Source: Amphiscolops sp. MND2022
Lineage: Eukaryota
Direction of reading: 5' to 3'
Assembly (NCBI GenBank): GCA_964187785.1
Contig: OZ076409.1
Coordinates: 26,164,001 to 26,228,000 of the forward strand
Length of the DNA: 64,000 nucleotides
In this document: piece after piece, positions 13,601 to 55,900 of the stretch
Layout: each line of letters begins with the position of its first letter
Numbering within the stretch: position 1 is the first letter of the stretch
Program-made: the position numbers and the translations under genes
Notes under the pieces: generated by a model
Told to the model about the DNA's origin: nothing
Seen by the model: only the letters and a program-made list of their open reading frames with translations
Databases searched by the model: none

Positions 13601-16600
13601 CCAGTGTCGACTAGAACGGAGTTCATCTTTGTCTGCGTTTCCGATAGAGACTTTTATCCTAGAGCCTTTGTTCGAATGGCGTGGTATCCATTCAAGCGAT
13701 AGCGGCAAAGTGAATCACAACGTGGTGTGAATTGTTTTCGGAGACGGAGGGACGTTATTTATCTCCGCCAGCCTACCAAAAATTACTTTTCCAAGTCACA
13801 ACGGTTCATGACCGCATATTCTAAGTTGCCTTACATGTAGCACTTCCGCGCTTTCCAGGAGTTACATAAAGACTCTAAGCTTCGCAAGTAGCATCAAGTC
13901 CAGATTGTTGAGACTGTCGGCATCTGTGGGGAAACTGTCGTCGTGTGGGGATACTGTCATATGGTTTTTGCTTAAAAATAACATACATAACATGGCGGTG
14001 CCATATGCTTTGATGTTCAACTGTTCAAATGGTTCTTGAATAAACAAATGCATCATGCAAGCGTCATATGGTCACTTCAACACCCGAAGCTTCTTTCCTA
14101 CTACATTCAAAAGCCATTTTGAAACGTGCTTCTCACTTAGTTCGGACAAATACCTAATGATATGACAAATTTTAATACTGCTACATGTTTTCCTGTACAA
14201 ATAAAAAGCTATTTAACTGTTTCTGCAATTTTATTATGTAGAAAATGAAATGTATTGATCTTTCCTTGCAGAAATTCAAATGTTTCTGCATGATATTTTC
14301 GTCTAGGCATTCTTTTAAATTTTCCCTGAATAATATTCCCCTTAATTTCGTGAAGGCATTAAACAAAACAAGCCGGGAACAGGATAAATCGGCACCCACT
14401 GTAGGCTTGCAAAGAACAAAAATACTTCAGAGCGTCGAGGCTTGTCTACTGAAAAATTCTCAATTTCACAATACCGAAAAAAACCTAAAGGAGACTCTTT
14501 GATCTTAGAAGGTCTTTTTCATAACTAAATTACCAAAAAACCAAAAGGGGGAACACTTTTACAAAATTGATTTTTTTTTCAAAAAAGCTTTTTTCAAAAA
14601 AAAACCTAGGTCTCTGTTGTGAAACTAACCTATTAGGTTTTGTGAAAAAACCCCATTTCGGTTCTAGGACATTACGCCCAAGGAACTTACGTCCAAACGG
14701 AAATTACGCCCAAGGAAATTAGGCTATTCAAAGAGAATAGCAGCGATTTTTTCAGGTTATTATTTGAAGAGGTTAGCTTCGCTCCCTTCGCCAAGTAGCA
14801 ACATTGAGGCATGGTCATATTGGCACGTCGCTCCGCTTCGCTTCGCTCCTGCATTTAGGGCACTAGGGGTATGTGAGTATAGCTGATTACATTATCGTAA
14901 TTTCCTTGTGCGTAATTTACATTTGGGCGTAATGTCCGCTTTGGGCGCAATGTCCTTGGGCGTAATGTCCGGACACCCCCATTTCATATTTAATCGAAAT
15001 AAGTTAGTGAAAATAGGAATGGAAAGACCCTTCCAACTAATTTGCCAGTTTGTAGAATTTTGGCATTCGGCATGAAATGGTCTTTTCGATCGGATTGAAA
15101 AAAAACACGACGACTCTATAATATAGCTGAAATCCAAAAATTCTAACTGTAAAAGACATAGAGAACAAGCATCCATGAAACATTGCAATATTGCAAAGCT
15201 AGCGTTGTTATATCGATTGCATGAAAGTTGTGTTTCGGACCTGATTCGTTATAATTGTTCATCGTTCATCGGGAAACAGATGAAAAGATTCAGGTCTTCA
15301 TGTTTATAGTTCTCAGTATCTGTGAACTCGATGCCTTTATGATGTTTCAGAAAGGAAACACAGCTCTCCACATAGCGTCTCTGTCGGGTCATTTGCCTCT
15401 GGTGCAGCTACTGGTGTCACGAGGAGCAGCCGTGAACTCGGTCACCCCCGAACGGGCTTTCACTCCGCTGTACATGGCCGCTCAAGAGAACCATCTCTCC
15501 GTTGTCAAGTTTCTCGTTGACAATGGAGCCGATGTCAATCTTCTAACAGATGTGAGTTCGAACCTGATCTCCAGTTATCTTAATTATTGTTCGTATGTGG
15601 ACATTCACGCCGAGGTTGATTTTTCGAAATTTAAGACAATCTATTAAGAAATTTAAGATAATTTATTAAAAGAAAATTCAATTCTGAAACATTAAGAATA
15701 TATTGAAACTTTATAATGAAAATTTATATTAGGTACTCAGAAGTCAACTGGGCCACGAAAAGGCTGGGAAGCTGGCATTTTTCTATCGAAAATTGAACAA
15801 ATTACATGATTTCTTCAAGATTTGTTAGCTTCTTGTAATGGAAGTTTCTGAAACATTTTGTTTTTCTGGGCACTGACAAAAAAATACCAAAAACTTTCTG
15901 AATAAGTTACATGTTTTGTTGTTCTGAATATTAAAACACGTTTTTTAAATGACAACCCAATGTTGTGAATTGATTGTGTCTTTTGGTACTAATGTCCAGC
16001 TGACCTTGAAAATGTGAAACGAATTCTGATCTTTTCCTTTTTACAGAAATGATAAATTGAACAGTTTTTCTATCCGATTATTTGCTGTGGGGTTGTTTTT
16101 AATGGGAGTTCATAATTAGAAACAAGTTGGAGCTTTGAGAAAGCAATGAAATCATGTAGATGAAATGTTTCAGGACGGTTTCAGTCCCTTAGCAGTAGCT
16201 GTACAACAAAGACACGCTGACATTGTCTCGTTTTTGCTTCGTTTCGACTCAAGTGCGGGTGGTAACCGAGCCGCTACTCCCAACAACTACAACGATAACA
16301 CGAGTACTCTGATTGGAACCACGAGAAGACAACCTGCGGCTGGTGGCAAGAGGTCAAATCTGCCTGACCTCCACATCGCTGTCAAAAAAGATGACTCAAA
16401 GGCCACTGCTCTCTTACTCCAGCAACCCTCAGCTGACCCCAATGTCAGGGCCCCTGGAAGCGCGTTCACTGCATTGCACGTTGCTTCTCACTACGGATAC
16501 GTCAGCATCGCCCAAATCTTGCTCTCACACGGAGCGAACCCTAATCTGACTGCAGGCAAAGATAACATCTCGCCGCTTCACGTTGCGGCCAAATTCGGGC

Positions 16601-19600
16601 AGACTGAGATGTGCAAAGTTCTCCTTAGTCACGGAGCTGAGCCTAATGCCAAAACCAAAGACGGTCTCACTGCGTTGCATTTGGCGAGTCGTGGAGGTCA
16701 CGAGGAAGTGGTTGATTGTTTACTATTGCATGGTGGAGGAGGATTCGTCGAGTTTCGGATGAAGACGAAAAGTGGGTTGACGGCCCTCCATTCAGCTGCA
16801 CAGGCCAACACCCCCGATGGCCAAGACTGCAACCCTGGTCACATCTCGTGCGCGAGACTGCTTCTGTTCCATGGAATTCACGTTGACGAGGTTTCTCGCG
16901 ATTTGCTGACGCCTCTTCACATATCGGCGCATTGCGGTTAGAAATCGAGATTTTTCATCGACACATGAAGCAAAACAAATTTAACATTTATATTAGTTTT
17001 CATGAAGTGATTTAATAGTAACTGGTAGGTATTTGGGGTTATAGGAAAAATTGCAGAAATGAAAACTCACACGGAAAATGCCCTGAGTTAAAAACGCCCA
17101 CAGAAAAAAAAGTCCATAGGAGATATTGACTGGTAGAATTTGTTTTCACATCAACTATAATTTTTATATTGGTTTATGACTCGGCCTTCGTCGAAACTAG
17201 CCGCTAGACCGGCAATGTCTCGCCTCGCTCTTGCATTTAGGACACAAGAGGTAGGTGGCTATATTTTACTACGTTATCGTAATTTCCTATTGGCGTTATT
17301 TCGTTTCGAGCGTTTTTTTTTCAGACACCGTATTCGCGACTTCAGCGTTTTGCAATTCATATGTTTGTCACATGATTTTTAATGACATACTGACAGTCCT
17401 GTTTAAAACACATCTGCTTATGAAGGATTAAAAACTGTAGTTCTCTAACGCCCCTCCCCCTTAAGCAGTTTTGTCGAATATTTTGTTGAATTTTTCATGT
17501 GCCATGTTTTCACTTTTAATCATGCCTTTCTTTTTAAACCAGGTAATGCAAGCATGGCGGAATACCTGTTGCAACATTATGCGAACCCGGATGCGAGGGC
17601 TTTGAATGGGTTCGCCCCTCTGCACGTGGCTGTTAGGAAACGACGAGTACCCGTCATCAGGTTGCTGTTGAGGTATTTCGCTGATGTAAACGTAACCACT
17701 GAGTCTGGTCTGACTCCCTTGCATGCAGCAGCTTTCACGGGAGCTGAAGAGGAACTGAACCTGTTGTTGAAAAGTGGAGCTGTGGTCAATGCAGAGAGCG
17801 CTTTGGGCGAACGACCTCTGCATTTGGCTGTGCGAAATGACCACCTCAGAGTGGCTGAGATCCTACTGAAATTTGGTTAGTGAATTTAGTACTTGAATTA
17901 AATGATATATAGTTCATATTCCTCTAAGGGTTATCATTCGCCACGGCTCAAAATTTTAGTGATTGGTGGCACGAATTATATAGGTAATATTGCAATTGAA
18001 TTTGTTTCACGAATGCTGTGCGAAATGGAATAGAAGCGTATTTGTTGTTGCTCCTGAATCAACAATCTACCCGAATTATGTTTATTTGATATTCATTGAT
18101 CCTAGTGTGTCTACGGGCAGCTTAGAAGTCTTTATGTCTGGTCCAGATTGCCAATAAAATACTCAAATTCATGCTGAGGAATTTAATGTTGAGACACAAC
18201 AAAATTGCATTCCTTCTATTTATAGAATTATAGTTTAAGCACCTTCGAAACCTGGCCATGCTCCTGTGAAACATGTTCCAAGAATTTACGAGCCCTATTC
18301 TTAGCGAATATTGAGCCCCGATCTCTACAAATTAAAAGCCATATCATTTAACATAAGCTGTGACTGTCTTTTAAATTTCGAAGCTTTGATGGGACGGAAA
18401 TCGATGGATTCTATTGAACTTGTCAAACATTTAGTCATAAAATTGCCAAGATAGCGATGCCTTGATTGATAATAGAACTAAAACTACGACTGTAAGGAGA
18501 TAGTTTGAAGAAAGACTATTTAGCTTAGTTGGTTTGACCGTTCAGTTGAAATGCTTCTGTTTATAATAGTTGTACTCGTGTCAAATTGACTCCTCTGCTG
18601 AATAATTACTTTTATCTGATCTGTTTTGGATTACCTGGACAGCCGATACGTTTAGGGAAAAATCAACAGAACTAAAACTAACTGCAAATCAACCTATCTA
18701 CGTAACGCGATTTTGAATTTTTACCACGGATGTTTATTTGGAAAAAAGTCGTGTGCTGATATAGCAGAAGAGTTTTTTATAAACTCCGCTAGTGGTTTCG
18801 ATTGATAGTTCTCGATATTATTCCTGTCAAAAGGATCTGGTCTGGTTCTGTGACTTCGTTTGTAGCTTTTATCATGACTTGGGTCTCGTGTTGATTTGGT
18901 TTGGATGCGGTGACCAGTGCGTGCGTGGTGTCATTCATGGTACTTTTAGGAAGTGAGGTTGATGCCAGAACTGGAGACGGCGGCCAGACTTGCTTGCATC
19001 TGGCAGCCAGAGCCAACAGTGCGTCCATGTGCCATCTTCTGTTGAAACATGGTGCAAACCCATCCAACTTCGCTTCTTCGTCCGGTGGCCCCAGTGTGCT
19101 CCATGCAGCAGCTAGAGATGGCGCATTCGAGTGTGCACAGATGTTGCTCCAATGTGGAGTCGATCCTAACTGCAGAACAACTGTTAGTGCTTCGAAAGAA
19201 ATAAAGTTCATTTCCCCATAAGAGTTTATTCATTCATTTGTATGTCATTACATAAGTAATACACAATACAAACAAAAGGGACATAGAATGAGCTGATCAG
19301 CTCTTCTAATGTATTTACCCCCAGAGAACCAACAATGACTTTTTAAAGCTACCCCGTATTTCCTTTTTAATGCTTGTAGTCAATTCATAAATGATACGTT
19401 CAATGTTATATGACGTAAAATTATACCGGGTGGGTATATATCTGCTTTTTCTAAGTCGGTGCCCTTTCAGATACAATGGTACCATATTTGCAGCCAAGTG
19501 GTCAAGTAATGGTTTCAAAATTATTGAAATTTGAGATTTTCAGGTGTGAAAATTGTGCTTGTCAATACATTTTTGAAATGAAGCTTAGAAAAGTAATTTG

Positions 19601-22600: not shown

Positions 22601-25600
22601 TTTGTTGAGGTGTTGAAGGAACATTTAGCTGGATAGTCTAAGTACGTTCCCCGATCGAAGTAGCACAAAGCATTTCTACTACCGCTTGCCTTCGAGATAA
22701 AAAATTAGGTTATATTTAATCTTAATGACAATAAAAATGTCAAATGGAACCCTAGAAATAGCTAGATAACATCTATTGTTATGGGATCGAAAGCTATCAA
22801 GATACTCGAAGCATTCGGGCAAACGCTCCGAGAATAAAATGACTACCTACCAGAAATAAAACCCATTCTGAATTGAATTGAATTGGAATTTATCTGTTAT
22901 TCAATGAACGAAACGCAAGCAAATACAATTAATATACAATCATCGAACAACAGAACTTCCAAAGGCATATGCCCGCTTAACGGAAGCCTGATAAGTAATT
23001 CATAACATCAAAACAAAAATATGAGGAATGTCAATTTTTTATATTTTTAATTTTTTTTAAATTATTTTTTGAATTAAACAAAGTATGTAAGGAACCGTTT
23101 GATACTTTGCACTTAGATGTATTTCCAATATAAGGTACACAGATGCCTTGTGTGGTGAACCTGGTGTCTACTGGGAACTCCCACAGAAAACCATGTAACC
23201 GATTGTTGAAGTGTGCACACAGTGCCTACTTCGCGCATGGTTCCTAACAAGGGAGACCCCAGCAGACACCGCATAGTGCAGGCTGGGTTATGCCCGTCTT
23301 ACCCAATGTAAGGCTCTGAAAGTTCGCTCTTTTTGTAACCCCTCCTGAAAATGTTTCTTGACAATTCTTGAAAGTATCAGTGAACTGGGAATAAACCAAA
23401 GCTCTAAGCTATTCAATTTGAAAATCCCTTTTGACCGTAACAGACATTCAAAGCATTTCATCGGAAAGCTCCATTGTTTGTTTCTGCGTTAGCTGGAATA
23501 TTAAAACGCGGACAGTCAACTTTTTTCCCAACATTATTATTTTGAAACGTTCAGTTCTACTTAAAGACGGCGAGAGCGAAACGGTCTCGGGTCCTGTTTC
23601 TTTTTTGAGAGAAAGCTAGTGATTGCTTGCTGAACGGCTAACGTTTAAAAGGTTTTCAGCGCTATCATATTTGTTCAAATTTATTTTCTTGTATTCATGT
23701 CGCAAAGCATCTCCCAAGATTTGGATGCTTTCAGTAAATCTGGCTAGGTTTGAATTTTTTTTCGATATTTCAAAAGTTGGGACTTCTAAGAAATCTGTTT
23801 GGAATTAAAGTTTCACTTCTGGACATTTTTATAAAATCCGATTTATCCGGAAAATGCGGAAATGCTAGATGTATTGGAGTTTTTGCAGTTGCAGAAGTAA
23901 TGCTGAGCCCGAGGGATCCGATGCCTAATAACAAAATTTTGAAAATGCTAAAGTGAATTCTCTTAGGTCAAAAATGCGTGAATTTCTTGTGGCCTACAAG
24001 TCAATTTTTGGTTTCAAGCTGAAACTAATTGAACTACAACTTTACTCATCTCTGAACGCGTGAACAGTATGGAAGCCGACCTCCCTCTGGAACAAGCAAC
24101 ATTTCTGGATACACGACCACCTCTTACGGCGACAATCTGTTGCTGTCCCCGGTCAACGCAGGGAGTCTTATGGCACGTTTGTCTATCTCTGACTTAGCCC
24201 ACGTTCGCACTTTCGAGCAACAAGTGCCATCAAACAATGCTGACGCTGTTCCTGACAGACTGTCTGCATCTGGATTTCTCATCAGCTTCGTGGCGGATGC
24301 CAAAGGATGCAGAATGCGCGCAGCCAGAGGAAATAGACTGTGCTTTATTATACCAGCTAGATCGTGTGAACAGCCCCAGAGGATTACGTGCAGACATGTG
24401 AGGAGACATAAACTAGCAGCTCCGCCTCCGTTGTGTGAGGACCAAGCGCTTGCGTCACGAGTGCTGGAGTTGGGCCCTGTCGGTACCAAGTTCACGGGCG
24501 GGCCTATAATAATTGAAGTTCCCTACGTGGCTTCTCTCTGCAACGGCGAACGAGAAATTGCAGTGTTCACTTTCACGTCAGCATCATCTAGCAGAATTGC
24601 CAGCAGCAGCGGCGGCGGCGGTCCCAACACATTTGGCGAATGGGTAGAACACAAGCAGCCGGAAATAGAAGCTAGGATTAAACGCTTGCTCGACAGTCAT
24701 CTCGCAGACACTAGGAATTCCTCTACAAAAAGAGGATCCGTGGGGGGTTAGTTTGTTGCCCATTAATCTCACAAATTGAGCATTCCCCTTGTCACTTGGG
24801 AACAAAAAATACATGCGTACTATCAAAGCAAGTACATTTGCTTACAAACACGACGAGACTATACACCTACGCCTAATTAATGCATTCTATTTTAGGGAGA
24901 TTTTGATGCTTCTGAACTCAAATGATTTTTTTCTGTTTTCCTCTGAATTTGTTTCAAACGTTCAAATGTGCATGAGGATGAACTACAGCGTGCTTACATG
25001 AATGATGCGCAGAATCAATTTTTAATGCATTAGATGGCATGCAAGAGAAACCAAGAGAAATATAGGTCAATGTGTGACAACAAAACTATTCGAGTACATG
25101 TATCATTGCACTGATAGATTCTTTCTCCTTCTGAATTGACTAACACTATTGACAAAGAAGACATTTGAATGGGACTGAAACAAAATATTCTGGATACTTG
25201 ATTTTTTTCATGTTCTGGAAGGAACTGTAAATAGTTTTTGTAAATCTGTTATACGTTTCGTAGAGATTGAAAACTTGAGAGTGATATCCAGTTAAATTAT
25301 TTGGAAATTTAAATTTAACCATTTTTAGTATCTTTGAGTTTCAACTGATCACGTACACAAGTTTTTTGCCGCACAAATGATTCAACTGATTTTCAACTTC
25401 AAAAATTTCCAAAATATGGAATGTCGCTTTGGAAACAACTGTTCGTGGAACGGGTAAATTTACAACAAATTCTTAAAAAAACTAATAATCGAGTGCCACG
25501 TTTTCATACGTGATATACCAAACCCCTGAGAAAGGGGAAATTTCCCAGCAAATTCAAACCAATTAGAGATCTCTTTTGAAAATACCCTCTCTAGACATTG

Positions 25601-28600
25601 TCAGGCAGATGCCTCCCACATAGGTTGTTTATATCAATTCAGTATTCATCTTTTTTCAACATTGTGCTTTAACGTTGAGTATACGCTGTTTTAATTCAAT
25701 TCTTTTATTTAAAGAAAGTGAAAAACCGACGTCATTTGTCAAAGAAGTCCCTCTATAATGAAATATTTTCATGGGTCTTTCCTGTATAAATAATCCTTAA
25801 AATCTGCTCGAAACATAGTGCATCTTTCATTTATTAGACACGTCAGTAGTGAAATAGCAGGGCATGTGAAACAGGGGCGGTTATAGGGGGCATCCCCTTT
25901 TTTGAAAAAATATAGTTCCATTGCTCAAAAAGGGGACCCTTCTAGGTTTCACTATAATTTTTATATGTAAGAAATAGGCGCTTGTTCACGCAAATGCCGT
26001 TTTCACTCAATCAGCATCCCCCTTAAAAATATTCTGAAACCGCCACTGATGTGAAAGTAAACGACTATTTCCTGTTAAAAATTCGCTCGTTTGTACTATC
26101 ACATAATTGACTTTTTAGGCGATTCAAGTGGAACCGAAGACGATGGAGAAGATCAGCGACTGACGCGGGTGATTCTGACAGAGATCCCACAGTACATAGC
26201 CCTGGTGAGTCGAGTGAAGAAGGACAGTGCAGACATCTCTCCTCTGGGCGGAATCCTCTCTTCGTCTGTGGAGGCACGCGTCCAGCTTTCCTTCCCCGAA
26301 AAGTGTGTGAAAAAAGACGTCTCTGTCTCTCTGCATGTGTTGCGGATCAGATCGGACATCACTAGTCGACTTCTCACTGCTAATCAAGGAGGGTAAGTTA
26401 GAAGACATCGGCAATCTATCTACATGGAAGATATTTGTCTCGTTTCCAAAAGATTTCAGCATGGAACAGCATTGATGTAAAATGACCCTAGATAGGGACA
26501 GACAGACTGATTATGTCAGGTTGGACATTCAGAGAGAGCTGATTTAACCCTAATTCGCATGGGAGTTTTTGCAAATATACAAAAAATGAAAAAAAATCAA
26601 TCGTCAATATCTCCTCTACTACGCATATCAGAATTGTTGCAAAACATCAAAAAATTGAAGGGGTCTTTTTGAGGAAAAATGTTACGCTGAAAAAAGGAAA
26701 ACCTTTTTGGTTCAGTTTTCTAGGCCTAATGGTTCAATTTGACACCAAAAAAATTCGTAGAATTTTGTAGAACTATTTTGGTCAGTTCGTGTGGATTGAG
26801 AAAAAAGTCACTATTATAGTCGCGTTTCACTTCATGAAGCGCCGACTAAAAATGTATGCTCCTTTAACCTTAACTTGGCCAAAACACGAAAAAGCATAAA
26901 TTTAACTACATTTGGATGAATTTGATTCTTTTCAGTGGAGAAATTGAGGATGAATATGATTTGAAATAGATTTAGAAACCTCATAATTTTCCTCATAGGG
27001 TGTGCCAAAAACGGCACATTAGCTAAAAAAGGTAAAAAAAGGCTCTTCGCAAAATTTTCAGAAAAAAATTATTTTCAAGTAAATTTCCAATTCACTTCAA
27101 AATTTTTGGTCATGAAATGACTGAAAACAGTTTCGGTGAGAGTTTACACAGAGGTGACGCTGGCATTTTTTGCACCAAACAGTGCTCTTGGCATTGCAAC
27201 CAGGTAACTTGCATCGTTGTCTGTCGACCGACTCAGGCCAGTGACCACCGTTGCTTGATTGCATTGCTCGCAGTAGTAATGGTGACGCCACCCGAACTGG
27301 TGTTTCCATCTCAGGCACTTTTTTTCGTGGACGCCCCCTTGGTGTAACAGGATCAACTGTCATACTTGTAAGACACGAACACAAGCGTGAACAGAAGTCA
27401 AATAAGCTCAAAGTGTCATTTATTGGAAGTTGGGAGTCCTCAGCGTCTCTTCTATAAAGGACCCAGCTATTGACGAAGAACGCATCGATGAAATGGAAAA
27501 AAATTCTCAAGTAATGACGAGTTACACAGTGTTGTCCAGAGCGGTAAAGTGCAATGTATCTGTTGAACTCATCTACATAACCCATATGCTTATTGTATTC
27601 CATTACAATCGCTGGGCAGTCCACAATTTTTCTGTTTCTTTCCCCTTTGTCATACCTTTGTTGCTGATAAACCGGTTGGCCACCAACGAAAGAGCTGAGC
27701 AATGAAACCTGCTTGTTATCATGCCATAACACAGCAGCGAGTCGGATGCCATTGACCTCACATTGTTGTTCTTGAATTGACCCTCTAGATGGTTTTGACA
27801 ATTTTTCGAACGATAATCCAGGTGCTCTGTTCAACCGAATAGTCCCGAGCATGTAAACGTCTTTCTGAGCCAGTGCTACTTGGAGTTTTGGAGAATTGAA
27901 GTAGTTGTCTGCGTATAACCTGTAAAATTTTCCGTCGGGGATAGCCTCCGCTAGTCGCATCACCACTGCCGAAGCTTTCCCGAAATCATTATCGAACTTT
28001 TTCTCGATACGAGTTTTGCCGCAATAAAATTCAACGTATCTTTCGCCCAATACATATGCATTTGCGGTAATTTGATCAGAGACATCCATTTTGAAACTCC
28101 AATGAAAACTAAAAGTTCCTTCGAATCAAGGTTAAATGGGTCATTGATGGATTGCTGTCGTGCATACAGGTTTGTATTGTAGCAAATATTTTCTAGGAAT
28201 TCGGTTGTCAGATAATCTGAAAGGTATTCGAAAGGTTTTCGCATTTTTGAAACCACTTCTCTATCTTCAGAGGCTGCTGGAATGTCAAAAGCATCCGTTC
28301 GATTCCGCCACCTAAGTTCCTTGGTATTCGGCAGAATGAGGTCGTCTTCACTTTCTTCTTGTGATTTGTTTATTAAATCTTCCCCAATGTTCTCTTTATC
28401 GCTGTCATCGCTTGAATCAGAAGATGAAAACTCAGTAACTGTTGCTGTTTCCTCACCAAGTTTCAGCCCATAAAAGGCTCTGTTAGCCTTGTTGCTCACA
28501 GATTCCTTGAGTGGTATGTCCAAATCGGAGTCATCAGTCACCTCTGTAGCCAGTGGAAGCTCATTCATTGATTTCAAACATCTCTTCTTCACGTACTTTT

Positions 28601-31600
28601 TAGGGACAACCATGTTCCATTCTTCAGGATAATTGTCAAAAGTAACTTGGTAACCGGTTTTTAAAACCTGCAAGATTGAGCCAGGATAGTAATGCCCCCA
28701 TCTCGTTTCATCAGCCCAGAAAATATCAACTGGATCTCCGACGTTAAAAACCATAATTTCTGAAAAATAGTGAAAATGAAGAATAATCTCGTTTTACTGT
28801 TGTTATTTTATGTGCCTAAAATGGCACGCTATTTTCTACAGGATTTCCGAAAGAATGGGGCAAAACGGCACACCTGAATTTTAACGGTAGCGAAGTACAC
28901 TTTCTGTAAATTATTATAAAAAAGAATGACCAAATTCTGTAACGTATTCGCTGAGATATGGTGTTGCTAAGTTTCTAATACAAATGCATTATGCCAGACT
29001 AAATGTGTTAATAACAGTAGTTGCCTTTAATCAAGCTGCATTATTGTATTAACTTTATCTCTGTGTCGTACTGTCGGCAGCCAATCAGATTTCGTGATTT
29101 AATTTGGATTGAAATGGTTATTACGTCATGCTCACAGTCACAATTCAATTTACACGCTGTGCCAAATTTGGCACATTGGCCAAGTTAAGGTTAAAATACC
29201 GCTATGCTATTTCGGGTTAAGCATTATAGGTCGTTCATGGTAAGTTCATGATGAAACACTTTGCAGTTGAGCAAATGTATGACGAAAAACGATTTTGGCT
29301 TCACAGCGGCGTTAGTCGTCGTTCATCGGAACTTTTTAGATTATGATTCCCAGCCACGGAGTCGAATTTTGGTAGTTTAAAACCCAGATTAAGATCATTC
29401 GCTACGACGTTCATCCTACCGGATTCTGTCAAAAGTCCGGCCGGATACCGACGTGCATTTGATGTCCGGTGCACCCCTAATGGGACCTGTATCTTTTGGA
29501 CCTGTATTTGCTCTGTTTAATTTGGCGTTTCAAAAAAATGCTCGGCAATGTTCTAAAAAATCTCACGTTTACAGTGTTTTCCAAAACTTGATACCCCTTC
29601 AGATTTTGACCAGTGATGTTGATTCCTTCTTGAATCAGTTTTTCATGCTTTTCAAACCATCCGAATTGTAGGTAGCAATGTTGGCATAATTACTGACTAT
29701 TATTCAGACTTTTCAAGTCAAAGTATTCTATTATAAGAAAACAGGACATTTCCATGGGCTCAATACTTCACGGAAAATCGGAAAAATCGATTGTCCATGA
29801 ATAACATTAAGTTTAGATCTTAATGCGAATTATAATTTGGTCTGAAATACTGTTTTGATTTGTGTTGAAAGTATCTATATATATCCTGTATAAATAGAAA
29901 AACTTTTTTCCTTTAAAAAATTCTTTTGAAAAATAGAAATGCACAACACTGATTATAGTACCATACTGTTTTTAGTCGGCGCTTTGAAGACTAAAATCAC
30001 CAGAATATTACAGTCACTTTTTGTATTCAAGACAGACACGAACGCGGCCAAAAGGAGTGAGTCTAAAAGATCATATAAATAATTTTCCTTTCTTCAAGTC
30101 AAAGGTACTGTTCCAAGATGTGGGTGCTGTCAGACTTCCGAGAAATCTGCCTTTAAGTGGAATTTCATTGTTTATTCTTGCTAATCAATTTGGATCATAT
30201 TCCTGGAAATGACTGGTACTGTTCTTCGAATTTCATTTGGAAGCTTTTGCTGTTCCAAAAATATTATAAAGGCCTGAACGGAACAATTTTTCTAGATAAA
30301 AAGAGGATTGTTAAAGTTTTGGATACTTTCAGCCAAAAGATTCAATTTTTAATGGAAACTGATTTAATTAGCTGATGTGCATAGGTATGTGCAACCGAAC
30401 AACGCATTCTTCTGCAGTCCAGTGGTGACCGTGGAGCCCCGCAAGAGACAGTTCCACGAGCGCTTCAATATTTGCATTCCATCTCCAGTGCCAGCGCCCT
30501 CTAACGGCGGAAACGAGCTCAATTCGGGCGGCTCCCTCAGCAGACGACCCTCTCTGGGCAGTGGCCACAACAGCGTCATCCGATTACTCCGAAGTGTCAC
30601 TGGTAATCCATTCTTTCGTGAGCCTATTGTAGTAGGGGTGTGAATAACGTCTCAAAATGTTTCGGGAATAATGTCTAACAAATTGTCCGAAATACTTTTA
30701 GACGTTATTCTTGGTTTCAAGCCTCCTTCTTTTGCCTCACTTTGCTTATACATTTACAGCAACAATTATGCCAAAATGATCAAAAATAGTTCCACTAATG
30801 TAGTTTTGAAATGATTCGGTTTTGGTAATGATCAAGGCTGGCACGTTTGTTTTAAACAGCAGTAGAAAAACATGTTTTAAACAATAACAAAAAACATGTT
30901 TTTTTTTCACGTAGCTATGCCTCGCACCAAAGAAAAAATCCTAAACCTGAGGTGTTCCGACAAGGCATGAGTTACATAGAAAACTACTTTGGGCCTTGCC
31001 TATGGTTCTCTTCGAACAAATTTGGGTGTTGAGAAAGCTGGCAAACAAGCATTTTTGTTCAGACAGTTGAACGCTAAAAAATTGAACTCTCTCTGCATTA
31101 TAATTAAGCTTTGAACCTTACTTTTGGAAGAAAAATGCGCGGAAAAATAGAAAACAAATATTCGTTTTTTGAAAAACAAGACGGGAACGTCTAAAGTCGG
31201 TGCTATATCTCAGGCTCAAAAAGCGCAGTTTTCAAAATATGCGTAGGACGTTTTCATGAAAAAAGTCCTGCTTTCGAACCTCCGCCTCCTCCTTACGAAA
31301 AAGCAATATAATTCGGATATAACGTCAAAAGTTCGGATTTAGCGCTTAACTCCGGATATTGCGAGGGGGACTTCAATAAAATCGTAGGGGGGACCCTTTG
31401 GAGACAAAAAATTTTCGAAAAAAAGTCGCACAGTGCCGAAAAAAATCGAAAGGGGGGACCCTTTAGTCCCGTCCGGGTTTGTAGGTAACGTTTAAAAAGT
31501 AAAAAACCAAAGGGGGACCCTTTGGAATAACTTAAATGCGTTTCCGGGGTATTCGTTTAGTTTCCTTTAGTTGAAGATACTGAACGTTAACGTTCGTCGC

Positions 31601-34600: not shown

Positions 34601-37600
34601 TAGATATTGTATAGGATTTGCGTTGGTATTACCAGGAAGAATGGGGTTCGACTTTCACCAGTGCTTAACTTTTTTCTTTTCAATTTGAGCAATAATAGTC
34701 CGTTTTCAGATGAATCTTTTCAAATGTTAAGAAACGCACCCAATCCAATATTTCGACGTTTTATCCGTTTGATTTCACGTTTTGACAGAAAGAGCGTGTA
34801 GTATGACTCCGTCGAAGTGTTGTATTGTTTTACTTTGTACAAATTTCATCGTTTGCTGATATAACACGCAGCCATAAAAATGCACTGTATTCGAATTATC
34901 AACTTTGTTCCCAAATATATAGCGGGTCTTGCAAGGAGGAGGCAAGTGGAAACTCTTATATTTTGGATTGCTATTTTGGAACCCTTGATGCATTTTTGCG
35001 CGAGCTGGTTTTCTGATCTTTAGAGACTTTTTCAGATCAACGTATTCCGGTATTTTTTCGTCAAACAATTGAGACTGGAAAATCTGATCTTTCTTCTGGA
35101 GGCAATATTAGCAGTTGCTAGATAAAAATATCTTAGTGCCACTGCGCCTCTTGACAGTGCCTAGTTAGGCGTACAAAACGTGATCCTCACACAAATGTAC
35201 ACGAAGCCTTTTCATAATGGATCGTATTTTGAGGACGCCATAAAATAGAATTCGGCCATTGCGAGTACGGCCAAAAGTCAACCTGTTTTCTGAAACGTTT
35301 AGGACTTCCTTAGTAATTTGCTGTGAAGTTGCCAATGTGTCTCATCTTTTTCCGCCCATGTTTGGGAAAGGAGCATGTCTCTATCAGCCGCGTTTTTCCC
35401 CCAAACTTTGCCATTGTTTATTCTTGAAAGCAACCGAGTTCGACGATTAAAAATTGGTTCATGTAAAAAATGTATGCTAAAATAGGATATGTGCGACTGT
35501 TCACTTTATTGACTTTCTGCTTTACAAAACTTTATGAAATTTCTTAGAACTTAACTTCAGTTTTTGAACCTCAAATGCTCTTTCGAACAATCTTTGTATG
35601 GATGTTGCTAAAATGAAGCAGAACGGGGAATATCCAGGTGTTTAGTGGGCATCTTGTTGAAAATTTTCATTTTATTTGCGGTTTCGTCATGCTTATCAAC
35701 TTTTTTGATGCTTCTTGAATTCGATATATGCGAAGATTTGAGTATCTCAAATTCGAAAACCTTATGAGTGAATTCTGTATATGCGAAGATTTGAATATCT
35801 GATTCGAAAATCTAATGAGTGTATAATTCATTTTTTCAATTGAGAATTTTCAGCTCAGCATCTTTTGACAACTAGTACTACACTGCCTCGTGTTTCAGAC
35901 ACCGTGCATCCTGCTGTGTGGGAAGACATAACCGAACAAACGAGACTAGTGGAACTACAGAACGGGTGTGTGACTTTCTCCAGCAAAGTGTCGGCCAGGT
36001 TCTGGCTCGTTTTCTCACCCAGACCTCGTTCGATCCCAGAGGTGCTCAAAATAGCCCACACTGTATATAATGAAGCTATCCGTGTGCCCTACATGGCCAA
36101 GTTTGTAGTCTTTGCCAAGCGCCATGCCGAGAATGAAGCTAGACTGCGACTGTTCTGTGTCACCGATGACAAGCATGAAGGGTTCATGTCGGCCAATACC
36201 CTGGAGACTCAGGAGAACTTTACCCAAATTGCAAAGAGCCGAGACGTTGAGGTGGGTCATGATTAAATTCAATACATCTGTTTAGCAGTTTCCCAATATG
36301 ATTCTAGTTTCTGTTATGGTATTCAATGATTATCGAATTGCGATTGATATTTAAATGAGCACAACGATTATATTGGGCAAAGTTCAACATTGAGGAGGCA
36401 TGTGATATTCAGCGGACATCGCTTTTGTTATACAAATTTAGGATTAATGAAAGTTACAGTTTCTATAGGTAACATTTGAGGTTTGTTGATGAAATTATGA
36501 ATAATACCAGGATCTCATTAGTGAAAATAATTTTTATACTGAATTTTTTTGGTTAGTTGAAATGTAATAAAAAAGGCTGAAACGTCATTTGTTTGTTTTA
36601 TTCAATGCTAGAATGACTCATTCACTTCATTCTTCACTATTTCTAGATATTCGAGGGAAACCGAAATTACTTGGACTGGGATGCGAATTCCAATCTTTTC
36701 CCGGTACAGCACCCATTGAACTCCTTCAGACAGACTCCCATGATGGCCTCCAAGAATCCAGACGACCCTAGAAATGCGAATGGCAACAACGACCAACAGC
36801 AGCTCAGTCTCACCTTCTGGGCTTTCAAGGAAAACCGCGTTCATTTCTTCGTGCAAGTGAAGGACTCTCTGCTATTCAAAACTGGTTCACCTAGTGGCCG
36901 TTTGCAGATCTACAGCTCCCCACGCTCTCATCTGAAGCTGTTGAGAAATGAGGCCGAAATTCTGCAGCAGCATATTTGCACGCTAAATCTTGCCCTACCG
37001 GCAGTTTTCAAGCCCGAAATGTCAGACGAACTGAGTCCTGAGAATAGTCTGAACCATATTATAAACTTCGCGTCGGCCGGGGAACGAAGACGCGACAGGA
37101 GTGGCAGATTATGTGAACCTCATTTGTCGCCGGACAGTAGTGCAGAAAGAGCTCTGCTGAGACTGACTGTGGTTGCAGAGCACATTGGAAAAGACTGGCA
37201 GAAGCTGGGATTAGAGCTGGGACTGGACAAAAACAACATCAATATTATAGATTTGCAAGTAGGATCTGGAACTCCAATGGCTAATGGAAGTTCCACTGGC
37301 GCAGCCAAGAAGAATAGCGCAGATGCCCAGAAGGCGTATCGAATGTTGCATCATTGGGCCGAGGTGCAAGGGGTGAACGCAACAGGTTAATGCCAGCTTA
37401 GTGCTTTGTTTATTTTGATGTCTCTGCAGCCGCATGTTGAATTATGCTTTCTTTAGTTTTTAGACCAGTTATGCATCAGCATTTCATTTTTCCATATTTT
37501 TTGCTCCTGTTCTGGAAGTTTTTGCCTGGAATCCAAAAATCAACTCTCAAAGAATCCCATATTCTTTTATTCTATGTTGGCTGGAGCCATAGAAGCTGGT

Positions 37601-52999: not shown

Positions 53000-55900
53000 T
53001 TGGAAATCTGCTGGTTTCGGTAGTACTGGTTCTGAACTACTTTGGTTATTTCCTGAAACAGATCATTTTTTATAACCAAAAGTTTTTTGTATATCGTACT
53101 CCCCCGTACAAATTCGGTTGACTACATTTTCGGCTTGACCTTCTAACAGGTGATTTTTCGGTTTCTAGAAATTTATTTTCATTCTCACCGGTAGGCATCT
53201 CACCGTCTCAATTCGTCTTCGGGATTTGTGTTGATCGGCTTGTACCCGTTTCTTTCGGACGTATCCGGATTTTCCATCTCGAAATCGCTTTCCTCGTCAA
53301 TTTCACCCTCCTCGCTTTCTGATTCCGATTCGTATTTATGTGTCCGGTTTTGTATGATTTTCAATTTTCCATTCAGTATATCGCGGAGTATTTCATTCCA
53401 CTGAATGTATTTCCCGTCGACGCCTCGGAGACAGTGTCGATTCTTCGGTGTAATTTTGTCTCCGATTTGCGGTGCCCGTTCTTTCTTCTTTTCGGTCTGA
53501 AATACAATTGGTCCCGAAATGTGTTTTCAGTGAATTATTCTTCCACTTTCGGTGGTTACGGTATGTTCGGTTCCGCTTACCGCGGTTTGAATTTTCTTTT
53601 GAAATTTTCCTTCTAGTGATTTTCTATTGTAGTTTTTTTCTACAAATTTAAAGGGATATTCACTAACCGAATGTTTCTTTTTCGGTTGTTTGTCCACCGC
53701 CTTTTCCTCGGCTTTGGTTTTTGTTATGACCAGGTAATTTGTTACATCCCCCTCTTCATCCCTCGAAACATAGGTTGGGATTTTTGGCTTTCTTTCAGCT
53801 GAAACAGATAGTTCCGTCCAATCAGAGAGAATTGATTTACCGTCTTTAACCAGATTGGTTAATTCGGTTCGCAGCTTTCTACCGTGGTGTAGTTCGAATG
53901 GCGTTAATTTTAATCCGGTGTGTATTGTAAATCGCATTACTTTTAATGCTCTGTTTACACATTCGGTCAGGCATAAATTGTCTTCTAAATTAGCCACTAT
54001 TAAGTTCTTCATGGTTTGTATAGCGCGTTCTACTGCTCCCGTACCGGTATGTATTCTCGGTGTGCTGTATTCTATTTCAATGTTTTTCGATTTACAGAAT
54101 TCAATGTAGTCTTTTGGAATAAATGCTCCGCTTTTATCCGATTTAATTTTTCCGGTATTCCGTACAAGTTAAAGTTTTGTTTTAGGAAGTTAATTACTTC
54201 TTTTGTTTCGGATGTTTTGCAAATTTTTACGGTCGGCCATTTACTAAATCTATCTACCGCAATTAGTAGCTGGTTCTCCCCGTTCAATTTTTTGTTTGTG
54301 TATTTTTCCGGTAAAATCGATTTGAATTTCTTGTCCCGGTTCGGTAAGTGTTTTTAATTTTCCGCTATCGTTTTTCGGCAATTGATATTTTAAATTCTTA
54401 CCGGGTGATAAGCAGGCTACACAATTTTTGACTTTTTCTGCGATGTCTTTGGTGATGTTTGGCCACCAAAAGATTTTTGCTTCTGCAGCCATTTTGGTGG
54501 TTCCCGCATGTCCAAAGTGTAAGGTATTCAATAGCTTCTTTCGGAGTTCGGTTGGTACAATTATTTTGTCGTTTATGAAAGGTAGTCCCCATCTTGTTGA
54601 GATGTTTTCGAATTGTTGTCGATAATGTTCGGGTGCCATGCTGCGGTCTTCTCTTGTTAATGCTAGTTTTACCCGGTTTAGTTCGGCGTCCGTTGCCGAT
54701 TTTGCAATTAAGCTTTTCAGGTCCAGCATGAAATCCCTTTCCGCTTTCTTAGTTGTTTCTTCGGTGACTTTCTTTCTTTCGGTGACCACTCCGATTATTT
54801 GATTGATTTGCACGTAGTGTGCCTCTTTTCCTTCCGTGTTGTAGTTCTTTAGATCAACAATTGGTATGTTGTCCCCGCGTATGATTTGGCATTCTCCTTC
54901 ACTCTCCGGGTCATTTGATTGTTCTTCCGGCAATTGTTCTTCCATCGGGATTTGTTCCTGTTCTTCTCTAATTGTTTGTAGGGGTTGGTATCCTCCTCCC
55001 AACCTGTTTGCCCGTTGTATCAATTGTCCATCTATTTCAGCGATTTCTTCCCTACTTCTTTTGTTCGGTCGGGATGGGACAAAGATTGTTCGTTGGTCAT
55101 TCTGGTCATATCTTTTTCTCATTGTGCCGGGTCTAGCGATCTCTAGCCTTCTCTCCACTAATCTTCGGGTTTCCGGACTCTTTTCTCTCCTTTGTATAAT
55201 TTGCATGATTTCGGCAGTTGCGCCCCAATGAAAGTAATCGCGGTCCATTTCTTTTTCAATTGATGCTGTTGCTGGTTTCAAATGATTATGTAATGGTAAA
55301 GTTTCTTAACGTTTGAATTCTATCGCGTCGCTATTTGGACTGGTTTCCGTTCGTTCGTTTGTTTTGTTCACGTGTCGGTTTTTCTCGAATGTTCTATTCA
55401 TTTCTGATTGGCCGCTCAATTCACAGTCGTGTGTAATTTTTGCGTTCGGTGCGTGCTGTAATTGGTTTGTGAAAACTCTTCCGTATTTCAGATTCAATTC
55501 GGCTTGTTCCGTGAGAGTATTTATTACGTATTGTTCATCGTATGTGTTTTCCGTCGTGGCGCCCTCTACCGGATTGCGCCTTAAATAGTCCGTGAATTTC
55601 AAGTTGTTTCCGGCTATATGTTGTATTGAGATATCAAAATGTGCTAGCCGGTCTAACCATCTGGTTAGTCTTGCGCTGTATTGTTTGTTACATCTATTTC
55701 GTTTAATTAGGGGTTCTAATGCTTGATGATCGGTGTATAAAAACACCTTTTTCCCGTATAAGTAAAAACGGAATTTTTCTAATCCCCATACAACTGCTAA
55801 TAATTCAAGTTCTCCAATCGAAGAATTCTTTTCGCTGTCATTAAGGAATCTATTACCGAACGCTATCGGTTTTAATTCTCCATCTGCTTGTTTTTGCCAT

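Follow-up and report, generated by a model that had tools for sequence, protein, structure and literature searches.

A piggyBac transposon family of Amphiscolops sp. whose transposase begins with a Tudor/chromo-barrel domain, a possible reader of methylated chromatin

The window, a 64,000-nucleotide stretch of contig OZ076409.1 (assembly GCA_964187785.1, positions 26,164,001 to 26,228,000) from Amphiscolops sp. MND2022, contains an element of the piggyBac superfamily, identified by its DDE_Tnp_1_7 core, its TTAA sites, its short terminal inverted repeats (TIRs) beginning CC, and its Cys-rich domain. An initial annotation of this DNA had described a transposase enclosed by intact TIRs, and its ends are indeed undamaged: a perfect 20-nt inverted repeat (26863-26882 / 29176-29195) provides TTAA and a 15-nt TIR (CCTTAACTTGGCCAA) at each end. 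The features, in window coordinates, are as follows.

26864..26867, no strand: TTAA target-site duplication on the transposase 3' side; a 99% identical copy (C1383) also carries TTAA, within other flanking DNA
26868..26882, minus strand: 15-nt TIR, reading TTGGCCAAGTTAAGG in transposase orientation; perfect inverted repeat, with identical ends in C1383
26868..29190, minus strand: whole piggyBac element, 2,323 bp, subfamily A, internally deleted
27097..28089, minus strand: ORF2, 330 aa, second half of DDE_Tnp_1_7 and Cys-rich tail, in a frame different from that of ORF1
27100..27225, minus strand: C-terminal Cys-rich domain, ORF2 ~aa 289-330, from the Cys/His pattern in the translation
27960..28754, minus strand: ORF1, 264 aa, comprising domain, linker, the first 66 DDE profile positions, then out-of-frame read-through
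28034..28035, minus strand: junction of a 307-bp internal deletion, from two BLAST HSPs with one common junction base
28035..28235, minus strand: start of the DDE_Tnp_1_7 core, ORF1 aa 174-240 (PF13843, E 8.2e-10, profile 2-66)
28236..28577, minus strand: acidic Ser/Asp-rich linker, ~aa 60-173, from composition and pLDDT below 50 past residue 57
28578..28601, minus strand: basic patch KKYVKKRC immediately after the barrel, from the alignment
28584..28754, minus strand: Royal-family (Agenet/Tudor/chromo-barrel) domain, aa 1-57, from the initiator Met
29158..29175, no strand: subterminal palindrome TGTGCCAAATTTGGCACA, an inverted repeat adjoining the 5' TIR
29176..29190, minus strand: 15-nt TIR, the 5' end in transposase orientation, CCTTAACTTGGCCAA; perfect inverted repeat
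29191..29194, no strand: TTAA target-site duplication on the transposase 5' side

Relatives at full length measure ~2.63 kb (L003:1501-4135), and the 307-bp deletion, defined against L003 positions 2661-2967, removes DDE profile positions ~66-172 and shifts the frame; as a result, the transposase is split at ~28035 into ORF1 and ORF2, whose Pfam coordinates meet at the junction. The window copy is thus defective, with its transposase broken into two overlapping ORFs. ORF1 opens with exactly the peptide that the initial annotation had quoted as the transposase start, and the coordinates given there for a Tudor-like segment (28587-28754) correspond to aa 1-56; the domain does begin the transposase as proposed, but the supposed single transposase ORF is disrupted in the window, its DDE core being divided between ORF1 and ORF2. 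The C1383 copy, which is 99% identical and has other flanks with the same TTAA and CCTTAACTTGGCCAA ends, encodes the domain together with the DDE core in a 531-aa frame. Single frames containing both parts also occur in subfamily E (~420-430 aa) and in P0102, P0112, and P0117 (615-624 aa). Of the candidates scored, no copy from this genome was both domain-bearing and fully intact.

Outside the N-terminal domain, the protein is that of a piggyBac transposase. Both ORFs exceed the DDE_Tnp_1_7 (PF13843) cut-off of 22.4 bits, ORF1 with 38.9 and ORF2 with 96.6 (E 2.3e-27, profile 172-349), and the C1383 transposase matches the piggyBat structure sequence at E 8e-22. The Cys-rich tail of ORF2 can be aligned to the CRD found elsewhere among piggyBac proteins and gives weak Pfam matches to zinc-binding modules. 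The linker, weakly conserved in relatives (dN/dS 0.3-0.4), corresponds to the disordered N-terminal stretch usual in piggyBac proteins. Of the catalytic Asp residues, the second (DNYF) and the third (GYVD) are present in the transposase alignment; the region of the first is deleted from the window copy. In the column of that first Asp, subfamily A and the majority of its PGBD3-like clade have Gly, the Tara/Logan clade has Ser or Cys, and subfamily C retains Asp. Because the first catalytic Asp is replaced, the catalytic autonomy of the subfamily A and Tara/Logan transposases is uncertain. A second palindrome related to TGTGCCAAATTTGGCACA lies at 27001-27018, the 5' palindrome copy is common to the element and to a family of MITEs, and the subterminal palindromes are possible candidates for transposase-binding sites.

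The N-terminal 57 residues form a genuine five-stranded Royal-family barrel that starts from Met1. The window copy by itself stays under every Pfam threshold (E 0.03-0.06), which would suit an accidental resemblance or a recently captured host fragment without a role in the element; profile and structural matches are nevertheless significant. Searched against 1.84 billion representatives, a 60-aa query of the domain recovered 35 proteins with E<=1e-3. These are Tudor/Agenet proteins or piggyBac N-termini, and those that are not transposases pass the Pfam cut-offs of Tudor_5, Agenet, Tudor_3, and Tudor-knot; the Tudor-like resemblance of the window peptide exceeds chance. Among 18 transposase-linked domains, 11 match Agenet at E<=0.01 (best 7.5e-8) and 5 match MSL3_chromo-like, and P0096 scores 29.6 bits against a cut-off of 27, a family-level similarity to curated Royal-family members. 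A profile built from transposase-linked sequences only, searched against the PDB, returns the UHRF1 TTD (3.8e-6) and FXR1 (1e-4), in addition to FMRP, PHF20, and MSL3.

Structure prediction agrees with the profiles, so that the Tudor or chromo-barrel fold anticipated by the initial annotation is recovered by both routes. The AF2 model, computed from an alignment that also contained non-transposase Tudor/Agenet sequences, reaches pLDDT 89.3 and shows five strands in a closed barrel without the chromodomain helix; the single-sequence model is poor (pLDDT 54), with similar strand positions nonetheless. Nearly all of the best 50 Foldseek matches are Royal-family domains (TMq up to 0.79, with 0.65-0.79 for MSL3, PHF20, TIP60, FMRP, UHRF1, and SGF29), the exceptions being Rous sarcoma virus integrase chains at TM 0.54-0.58; the E-values are all >1e-3, as expected of a 57-aa domain. 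VIA-align superposes 52 residues on MRG2 bound to H3K36me3 with Z 9.8 and rmsd 0.7 Å, and gives Z 8.2-9.6 for MRG15, SGF29, UHRF1, FMRP, TDRD3, PHF1, and SMN. The closest Pfam family is Agenet, and the closest structures are MRG/MSL3 chromo-barrels and Tudors. A classical chromodomain of the chromovirus type was rejected, since neither the window copy nor any of the 18 family members matches PF00385 and the model is a closed five-strand barrel that lacks the helix.

The domain is distributed as an inherited part of a mobile lineage. It has 22 matches in the genome, from 100% down to 31% identity and almost all followed by a same-strand piggyBac core, and at least six diverged subfamilies have it at the start of their transposase; complete domain-bearing elements with TTAA and TIRs occur in at least three other public samples, and the family is also present in marine plankton DNA. 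The Tara element and the Logan element share 82% identity, and each has perfect TTAA and 17-nt TIRs within differing flanks. Between these two elements, dN/dS is 0.09 for the barrel, 0.40 for the linker, and 0.066 for the DDE core; within subfamily C the barrel is at 0.07 and the remainder at 0.31, and within subfamily B the barrel is at 0.08. The barrel is therefore an inherited and selected transposase part in a diversified lineage, and not a captured fragment confined to one copy, an outcome that the initial annotation had named as counting against its proposal. Chance resemblance or recent capture is refuted by the spread of copies, the elements of other samples, the low dN/dS of the barrel (0.07-0.09), and the profile and structural matches, and we give it almost no credence. 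In the DDE tree, domain-bearing transposases stand at three separate places (AU p 6e-38), and the barrel is absent from the nearest database relatives of two domain-bearing clades (75 and 120), except P0117.

The same genome contains a MITE family of ~0.6 kb that has the 38-bp end in common with the element, together with TTAA duplications and TIRs of its own, similarly arranged; at least 31 genomic matches retain this 38-bp end, and the 14 inspected are 89-98% identical. A domesticated host gene of the PGBD type was rejected on account of the multiple copies bounded by TIRs and TTAA, the matching MITEs, and the decayed paralogues.

The initial annotation placed cage aromatics at four positions, and W13, Y23, F39, and Y42 are found where it put them, together with a fifth aromatic, W46. 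Among the 18 members, W13 is invariant, an aromatic occupies position 23 in 18, position 39 in 17, and position 42 in 18, and W46 is kept in 17, which yields a family pattern of W13, Y/W23, F/Y39, Y/W/F42, and W46 with an acidic residue at 40. In HMMER alignments, positions 23, 39, and 42 fall opposite 'AWF' and 'YDDY' of UHRF1 and Y, Y, W, W of MRG2, which the literature describes as cage residues; judged from these alignments, the five conserved aromatics sit at the ligand-cage columns of solved readers.

The reading that we favor, and hold to be somewhat probable, is that the cage of the domain-bearing transposase reads methyl-lysine, tethers the enzyme to marked chromatin, and biases the choice of TTAA. 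In this mechanism, the methylated lysine bound by the conserved aromatic cage would most likely lie in a histone tail; binding of the mark would tether the transpososome to nucleosomes that bear it, and tethering would cause TTAA sites in one kind of chromatin to be used preferentially. A reader of methylated histones lies at the start of the transposase under this proposal, and therefore the elements may choose their landing sites by chromatin marks; if true, this would be a cut-and-paste element family with its own chromatin reader for target choice.

Alternatively, the barrel may be a DNA- or RNA-binding module for the element's own ends, for target DNA, or for the transcript, comparable to some chromo-barrels and to the SH3-like domain at the C-terminus of retroviral integrases. 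We consider this unlikely, yet with an appreciable share of probability, inasmuch as its structural neighbors include MSL3 with DNA and H4K20me1 (3oa6), PWWP with ssDNA, and the C-terminal domain of Rous sarcoma virus integrase (TMq about 0.57), the conserved patch after the barrel is rich in K/R in every subfamily, and palindromes that could be bound adjoin the TIR. Five near-invariant aromatics in the exact cage columns are, however, a methyl-ammonium signature that DNA binding does not need, and integrase C-terminal domains match at an rmsd of about 5 Å as against 0.7-1.9 Å for methyl-lysine readers. Moreover, end recognition in piggyBac is already provided by the Cys-rich domain (PMC7351741).

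A methyl-reading barrel could instead recognize methyl-arginine or methyl-lysine on a non-histone protein (sDMA of the PIWI or Sm type, a repair factor, or another host protein), which would link the transposase to piRNA/nuage machinery or DNA-repair factors and not to target-site chromatin. The initial annotation had put forward such an idea, the methyl-arginine readers SMN and TDRD3 superpose on the model (Z 8.2-9.1), and the UHRF1 TTD also reads LIG1 K126me3 (5yy9). Nevertheless, PIWI-binding extended Tudors need an SN-like extension, and the present 57-aa barrel is minimal, running straight into a disordered linker; PF00567, the extended Tudor family, is matched neither by the window copy nor by any of the 18 family members. 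An extended Tudor of the TDRD/piRNA type was accordingly rejected, the low-confidence acidic linker after the barrel showing no SN-like fold, and of the two functional ideas in the initial annotation, the piRNA link is for these reasons less likely than chromatin targeting. The best sequence and profile relatives are, furthermore, of the Agenet, UHRF1, FMRP, PHF20, and MSL3 class, and transposases work in the nucleus, on chromatin; a non-histone ligand is regarded as improbable.

The N-terminal region of piggyBac modulates activity, and the barrel may, by the same token, serve a regulatory or structural purpose (oligomerization, autoinhibition, nuclear import, or stability), with the aromatics building a hydrophobic core or an interface in place of a cage. 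The missing canonical first catalytic Asp in several domain-bearing transposases could likewise hint at a non-standard division of labor among subunits. Against this stand the aromatics themselves, conserved at the ligand-cage columns of solved readers and not at core positions alone, and the small size of the barrel, more than 100 disordered residues away from the core, so that we judge a purely regulatory or structural barrel to be very improbable.

The preferred reading, a chromatin reader within the transposase, has its best-known counterpart in the chromovirus integrase chromodomain, by which a transposable element reads chromatin for its choice of insertion site. In chromoviruses (Ty3/Gypsy), as is proposed here, the enzyme by which the element integrates its DNA carries a Royal-family reader of methyl-lysine; chromoviruses are, in contrast, LTR retrotransposons with a classical three-strand-plus-helix chromodomain at the C-terminus of a retroviral-type integrase, whereas the present family has its Tudor/chromo-barrel at the other end, the N-terminus, of a DDE transposase of the cut-and-paste piggyBac type. 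The PWWP of LEDGF/p75 tethers HIV integrase, and BET proteins bias MLV and piggyBac; in concept these are alike, a Royal-family or related reader bringing an integrase or transposase to marked chromatin, but in those cases a host protein distinct from the enzyme does the reading in trans, and here the putative reader is encoded by the element in cis. The proposed mechanism would thus follow the logic of chromovirus chromodomains and of the LEDGF PWWP for HIV integrase, inside a cut-and-paste transposase.

A full-text literature search gave no published account of a Tudor/chromo-barrel joined to a piggyBac transposase, in keeping with the initial annotation, which knew of no description. Gypsy-10_Ec32 of the alga Ectocarpus was reported in 2025 as, to its authors' knowledge, the first Tudor-domain transposable element (PMC12477816); it resembles the present family in that a TE-encoded protein carries a Tudor-type reader, and differs in being a stramenopile LTR retrotransposon with a C-terminal domain, the present family being a DNA transposon.

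Compared with other piggyBac proteins, the family shares with Trichoplusia ni piggyBac (6x67/6x68) and piggyBat (9c0f) the DDE_Tnp_1_7 core, TTAA, short TIRs, an acidic disordered N-terminal region, and the C-terminal Cys-rich domain; those enzymes are without a folded N-terminal domain, and they differ from subfamily A, which has Gly at the first catalytic Asp. PGBD1-SCAN, CSB-PGBD3, and ciliate PiggyMac/Tpb2 similarly join a piggyBac core to a chromatin- or transcription-related module, and histone methylation guides the ciliate cores through partner proteins. Such domesticated fusions are, however, immobile host genes without TIRs, whereas the present family is multi-copy, TIR/TTAA bounded, accompanied by matching MITEs, and holds the putative reader in the same polypeptide.

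Among host readers, MRG15/MRG2/MSL3, UHRF1, and FMRP/plant Agenet have the five-stranded barrel in common with the transposase domain (Z 8.4-9.8, rmsd 0.7-2.8 Å), as well as aromatics in matching cage columns. These proteins regulate host chromatin and often have tandem domains, while the domain described here is a single barrel, only 10-27% identical to them and attached to a transposase. Chromo-barrels and Tudor-like barrels can also bind nucleic acids, and the basic patch of the present protein adjoins the barrel.

The peptide in which the initial annotation had seen a Tudor-like domain is the exact start of a minus-strand ORF at 27960..28754, where the interval 28587-28754 corresponds to residues 1-56. 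The same annotation placed the transposase ORF within intact terminal inverted repeats (TIRs); the TIRs are indeed perfect, but the transposase is split over two ORFs.

Features of the piggyBac element in the window
26868-29190: whole element, 2,323 bp
26863-26882 and 29176-29195: perfect 20-nt inverted repeat, that is, the TTAA duplication plus a 15-nt TIR (CCTTAACTTGGCCAA) per end
27960..28754, minus strand: ORF1, 264 aa, comprising the barrel, a linker that is acidic and rich in Ser and Asp, and positions 2-66 of the Pfam DDE_Tnp_1_7 profile
27097..28089: ORF2, 330 aa, in a frame different from that of ORF1, comprising positions 172-349 of the DDE_Tnp_1_7 profile, followed by a Cys-rich tail

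Aligned against a 99% identical copy on contig C1383, the window copy proves to have lost 307 internal bp at position ~28035 of the window, with 1 base of microhomology; this deletion accounts for both the absent stretch of core and the shift in frame. TTAA is found at both copies and their flanks differ; therefore, the two represent independent insertions. Whether the barrel and the DDE core share one ORF elsewhere in the genome, a question raised together with the original proposal, is answered by the C1383 copy, in which both lie in one 531-aa frame (L003:1941-3533, on the extracted locus), with a separate frameshift near the C-terminus. The core, the TTAA duplications, the TIRs, and the Cys-rich domain assign the element to the piggyBac superfamily. 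Immediately upstream of the C1383 copy lies a 219-aa minus-strand ORF (L003:814-1473) that, as judged by eye, resembles the C-terminal portion of ORF2 from a non-LTR retrotransposon.

The window copy alone reaches no Pfam threshold (E 0.03 for Tudor_3 and 0.06 for Agenet), and a word-index protein search with residues 1-62 only gave no matches. An exhaustive phmmer search with the 60-aa segment retrieved 35 proteins at E<=1e-3 among 1.84 billion representatives. One group consists of multi-repeat or tandem proteins passing Pfam thresholds (Tudor_5, Agenet, Tudor_3, Tudor-knot, 53-BP1_Tudor, and similar), whose high totals are partly the sum of many weak repeats; the other consists of short N-terminal matches from Met1, several of which run on into DDE_Tnp_1_7 (the database proteins P0102, P0112, and P0083). 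Agenet is matched at E<=0.01 by 11 of 18 transposase-linked domains (best 7.5e-8), MSL3_chromo-like by five, and Tudor_3 by three; a classical chromodomain is rejected, as PF00385 has no match in the window copy or the family members. In order to avoid circularity, a further profile, A2, was restricted to transposase-linked sequences, and its 53 PDB matches are almost all Royal-family domains, including the UHRF1 tandem Tudor (3.8e-6), FXR1 (1e-4), FMRP, the PHF20 Tudor, and the MSL3 chromo-barrel.

AlphaFold2 models the domain with a pLDDT of 54 from the single sequence and of 89.3, with five strands, from the alignment. Nearly all of the best 50 Foldseek matches are Royal-family structures (MSL3 at TMq 0.78-0.79, PHF20, TIP60, FMRP, UHRF1, SGF29, and MRG15), the exceptions being Rous sarcoma virus integrase chains at lower TM; none of them has an E-value better than 4e-3, which the short length of the domain would predict. 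In VIA-align, the MRG2 chromo-barrel bound to H3K36me3 is superimposed with Z 9.8 and an rmsd of 0.7 A over 52 residues, followed by MRG15 (Z 9.6) and by SGF29, UHRF1, FMRP, TDRD3, PHF1, and SMN (Z 8.2-9.6). The Tudor-like fold of the initial annotation is thus borne out by profile, AlphaFold2, Foldseek, and VIA-align, while its SMN-like typing gives way to an 'Agenet/chromo-barrel-like Tudor', which fits better.

The W, Y, F, and Y originally assigned to four cage positions are conserved as aromatics, each in 17-18 of the 18 aligned sequences.

Residues of the predicted cage among 18 transposase-linked sequences
Position 13: W, 18/18
Position 23: Y or W, 18/18
Position 39: F or Y, 17/18
Position 40: D or E, 14/18
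Position 42: Y, W, or F, 18/18
Position 46: W, 17/18

In HMMER alignments, positions 23, 39, and 42 stand opposite the F and two Y of UHRF1 'AWF...YDDY', and positions 23, 39, 42, and 46 opposite Y, Y, W, and W of MRG2, which we take to be the methyl-lysine cage residues of these proteins. The alignments show the predicted methyl-lysine cage to be intact in the barrel, and modeled fold, profile, and cage together confirm its predicted membership of the Tudor clan.

A genome-wide search with the barrel returned 22 matches, ranging in identity from 100% down to 31%, nearly all of which then run into a same-strand piggyBac core; such a distribution speaks against capture of a host exon by a single copy, just as the 35 phmmer proteins, the PDB matches of the A2 profile, and VIA-align Z-scores of up to 9.8 speak against a chance pattern. 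The proposal that the resemblance arose by chance or from a captured fragment is refuted and retains next to no probability. A domesticated PGBD-type host gene is rejected on the basis of multiple TIR/TTAA-bounded copies in different flanks.

The barrel-bearing copies fall into at least six subfamilies in the genome. Further copies on C10, C2, C12, and C4 are older (75-94% identical) and decayed. In subfamily E, a single frame of ~420-430 aa spans the barrel and the greater part of the core. A subfamily C copy (L060:789-2604; C1:104094297-104096112 of the genome), with ORFs of 250 and 399 aa, is a single frameshift short of intact; subfamily C (L060 and L059) retains its barrel, its Cys-rich tail, and the canonical DDD residues, and its second copy, on C8, is similar to the first. 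No fully intact barrel-bearing copy was found in the genome among the scored candidates. A MITE family of ~0.6 kb shares its first 38 bp (TTAA, TIR, and the subterminal palindrome TGTGCCAAATTTGGCACA) with the subfamily A element, to which the window copy belongs, and is flanked by TTAA on both sides; its 3' TIR is almost the same, differing by a single mismatch. From 602 first-look candidates and 31 listed matches, 14 MITE copies were inspected (e.g., L017-L030, at positions ~1506-2098 each) and are 89-98% identical among themselves. Since these copies are alike, TTAA-flanked, and share their ends with subfamily A, the lineage was mobile recently. Tandem or nested MITE copies occur in L018 and L026.

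Outside the genome, P0112 and P0117 are intact proteins of 621 and 624 aa, encoded by elements with TTAA, perfect 17-nt TIRs, and differing flanks, and barrel ORFs followed by DDE ORFs (P0082 and P0084) occur on contigs of two further samples; some of these metagenomic contigs may derive from Amphiscolops sp. MND2022 or close relatives. The P0117 record holds precomputed Agenet and DDE_Tnp_1_7 matches with no name attached. The 75 closest relatives of subfamily A all lack the barrel; of the 120 closest to P0102, P0117 alone has it. On a DDE-core tree, six barrel-bearing transposases occupy three places.

Places of barrel-bearing transposases on the DDE-core tree
A+B+E clade: inside the PGBD3-like group
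P0102+P0117: inside the PGBD4-like group
Subfamily C: also PGBD4-like

Constraining the barrel-bearing transposases to one clade lowers the log-likelihood by 311 units (AU p 6e-38). The three places imply either transfer of the barrel, its gain on at least two occasions, or numerous losses; the tree of the 57-aa barrel alone is unresolved, being too short to separate module swapping from an ancient fusion with losses. The polyphyletic distribution suggests that accessory targeting modules pass between transposon lineages. In hhalign, the family profile showed no relation to the N-terminus of P0001, the barrel-less sister of A/B/E, which has its own beta-rich-looking extension of ~100 aa (P0001:1-100); N-terminal extensions, as yet unexplained, are also seen in P0009, P0011, and P0013 (820-853 aa).

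The first catalytic Asp column holds Gly in subfamily A (L003:2900-3000) and most of the PGBD3-like clade ('xGVSG'; alignment of P0001-P0075) and Ser or Cys in the clade of the Tara/Logan elements (P0102, P0112, and P0117); the Asp is kept in barrel-less relatives and subfamily C. Elements of the Tara/Logan clade are nevertheless bounded by perfect TIRs, with the DDE core at a dN/dS of 0.066, and some of the transposases without this Asp, judged from sequence, may use another acidic residue or depend on a partner. Selection was assessed with two complete elements from separate public samples, L051 (Tara Oceans) and L052 (Logan), which are 82% identical in DNA; dN/dS was 0.09 over the barrel, 0.40 over the linker, 0.066 over the DDE core, and 0.11 at the C-terminus. 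Because dN/dS is similarly low in barrel and core, the barrel is constrained as much as the catalytic core. Two more lineage pairs gave barrel values of 0.07 in subfamily C (remainder 0.31) and 0.08 in subfamily B; in both pairs dS is saturated, and the dN contrast is the robust part.

These data show a selected N-terminal reader-type barrel joined through a disordered acidic linker of >100 residues to a piggyBac core, in elements with a history of mobility. Chromovirus chromodomains tether in cis and the LEDGF PWWP domain in trans; by analogy, the barrel would bind methylated lysine on the nucleosome and, once bound, tether the transpososome, thereby biasing the TTAA sites used, a mechanism to which slightly better than even weight is given. 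The barrel might instead bind nucleic acid, as some chromo-barrels bind DNA and a basic patch adjoins this one, although this is rather unlikely. Recognition of methyl marks on proteins other than histones, such as PIWI or Sm, is less likely still, as the extended Tudor architecture of the piRNA pathway is absent (no PF00567 match in the window copy or 18 family members), and a regulatory or structural role is improbable. Beyond nucleosome binding itself, a natural piggyBac lineage may carry a portable methyl-lysine-reading N-terminal barrel that steers TTAA integration to one chromatin state and was either swapped among deeply diverged clades or fused to them independently; this wider proposition is tentative, with somewhat less than an even chance.

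To our knowledge, the built-in chromatin readers described so far belong to LTR retrotransposon integrases, with none recorded on a classical cut-and-paste transposase; Maverick integrases also bear chromodomains. The initial annotation knew of no description of this architecture, and full-text literature searches likewise yielded none for a Tudor or Agenet domain on piggyBac or on another cut-and-paste transposase; an uncurated entry in Repbase or Dfam is possible. A Gypsy element with a C-terminal Tudor, described from Ectocarpus in Genome Biology in 2025, is to its authors' knowledge the first transposable element reported with a Tudor (PMC12477816). Fusion of a transposable-element enzyme to a chromatin reader is known as such, and the barrel on piggyBac is a variant of such fusions. 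If true, the proposed mechanism would be the first known example of histone-mark reading in cis by a cut-and-paste DNA transposase. The choice of landing site is a central question of mobile-element biology, and piggyBac is a main genome-engineering vector for which much effort has gone into artificial fusions that bias integration. A natural, conserved, and selected reader-transposase fusion would open direct tests of the mark read, of insertion redirection, and of transplanting the 57-residue module. Ready internal controls for comparing insertion sites are provided by many barrel-less piggyBac copies with uninterrupted frames of 650-750 aa, 38-42% identical to subfamily A from residue ~107 and with no detectable barrel (C12:55015152, C13:40908447, C8:19237647, C7:62120024, C10:38302250, C4:68241004, and C3:32159589).

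In the window, plus-strand ORF fragments with ankyrin repeats, ZU5, and UPA plus death domains lie at 16165-16941, 24140-24751, and 36671-37390, respectively, and look like exons of a single metazoan ankyrin gene. The window copy lies antisense between the ZU5 and UPA/death exons and is probably placed in the gene body, within an intron; as a single gene-body insertion, it is uninformative on insertion preference. Two LTR-retrotransposon bodies are also present on the minus strand (54250-57822 and 60265-63827), one Gypsy-like (zf-CCHC, RVT_1, RNase H, and Integrase_H2C2) and the other BEL/Pao-like (Peptidase_A17 and rve).
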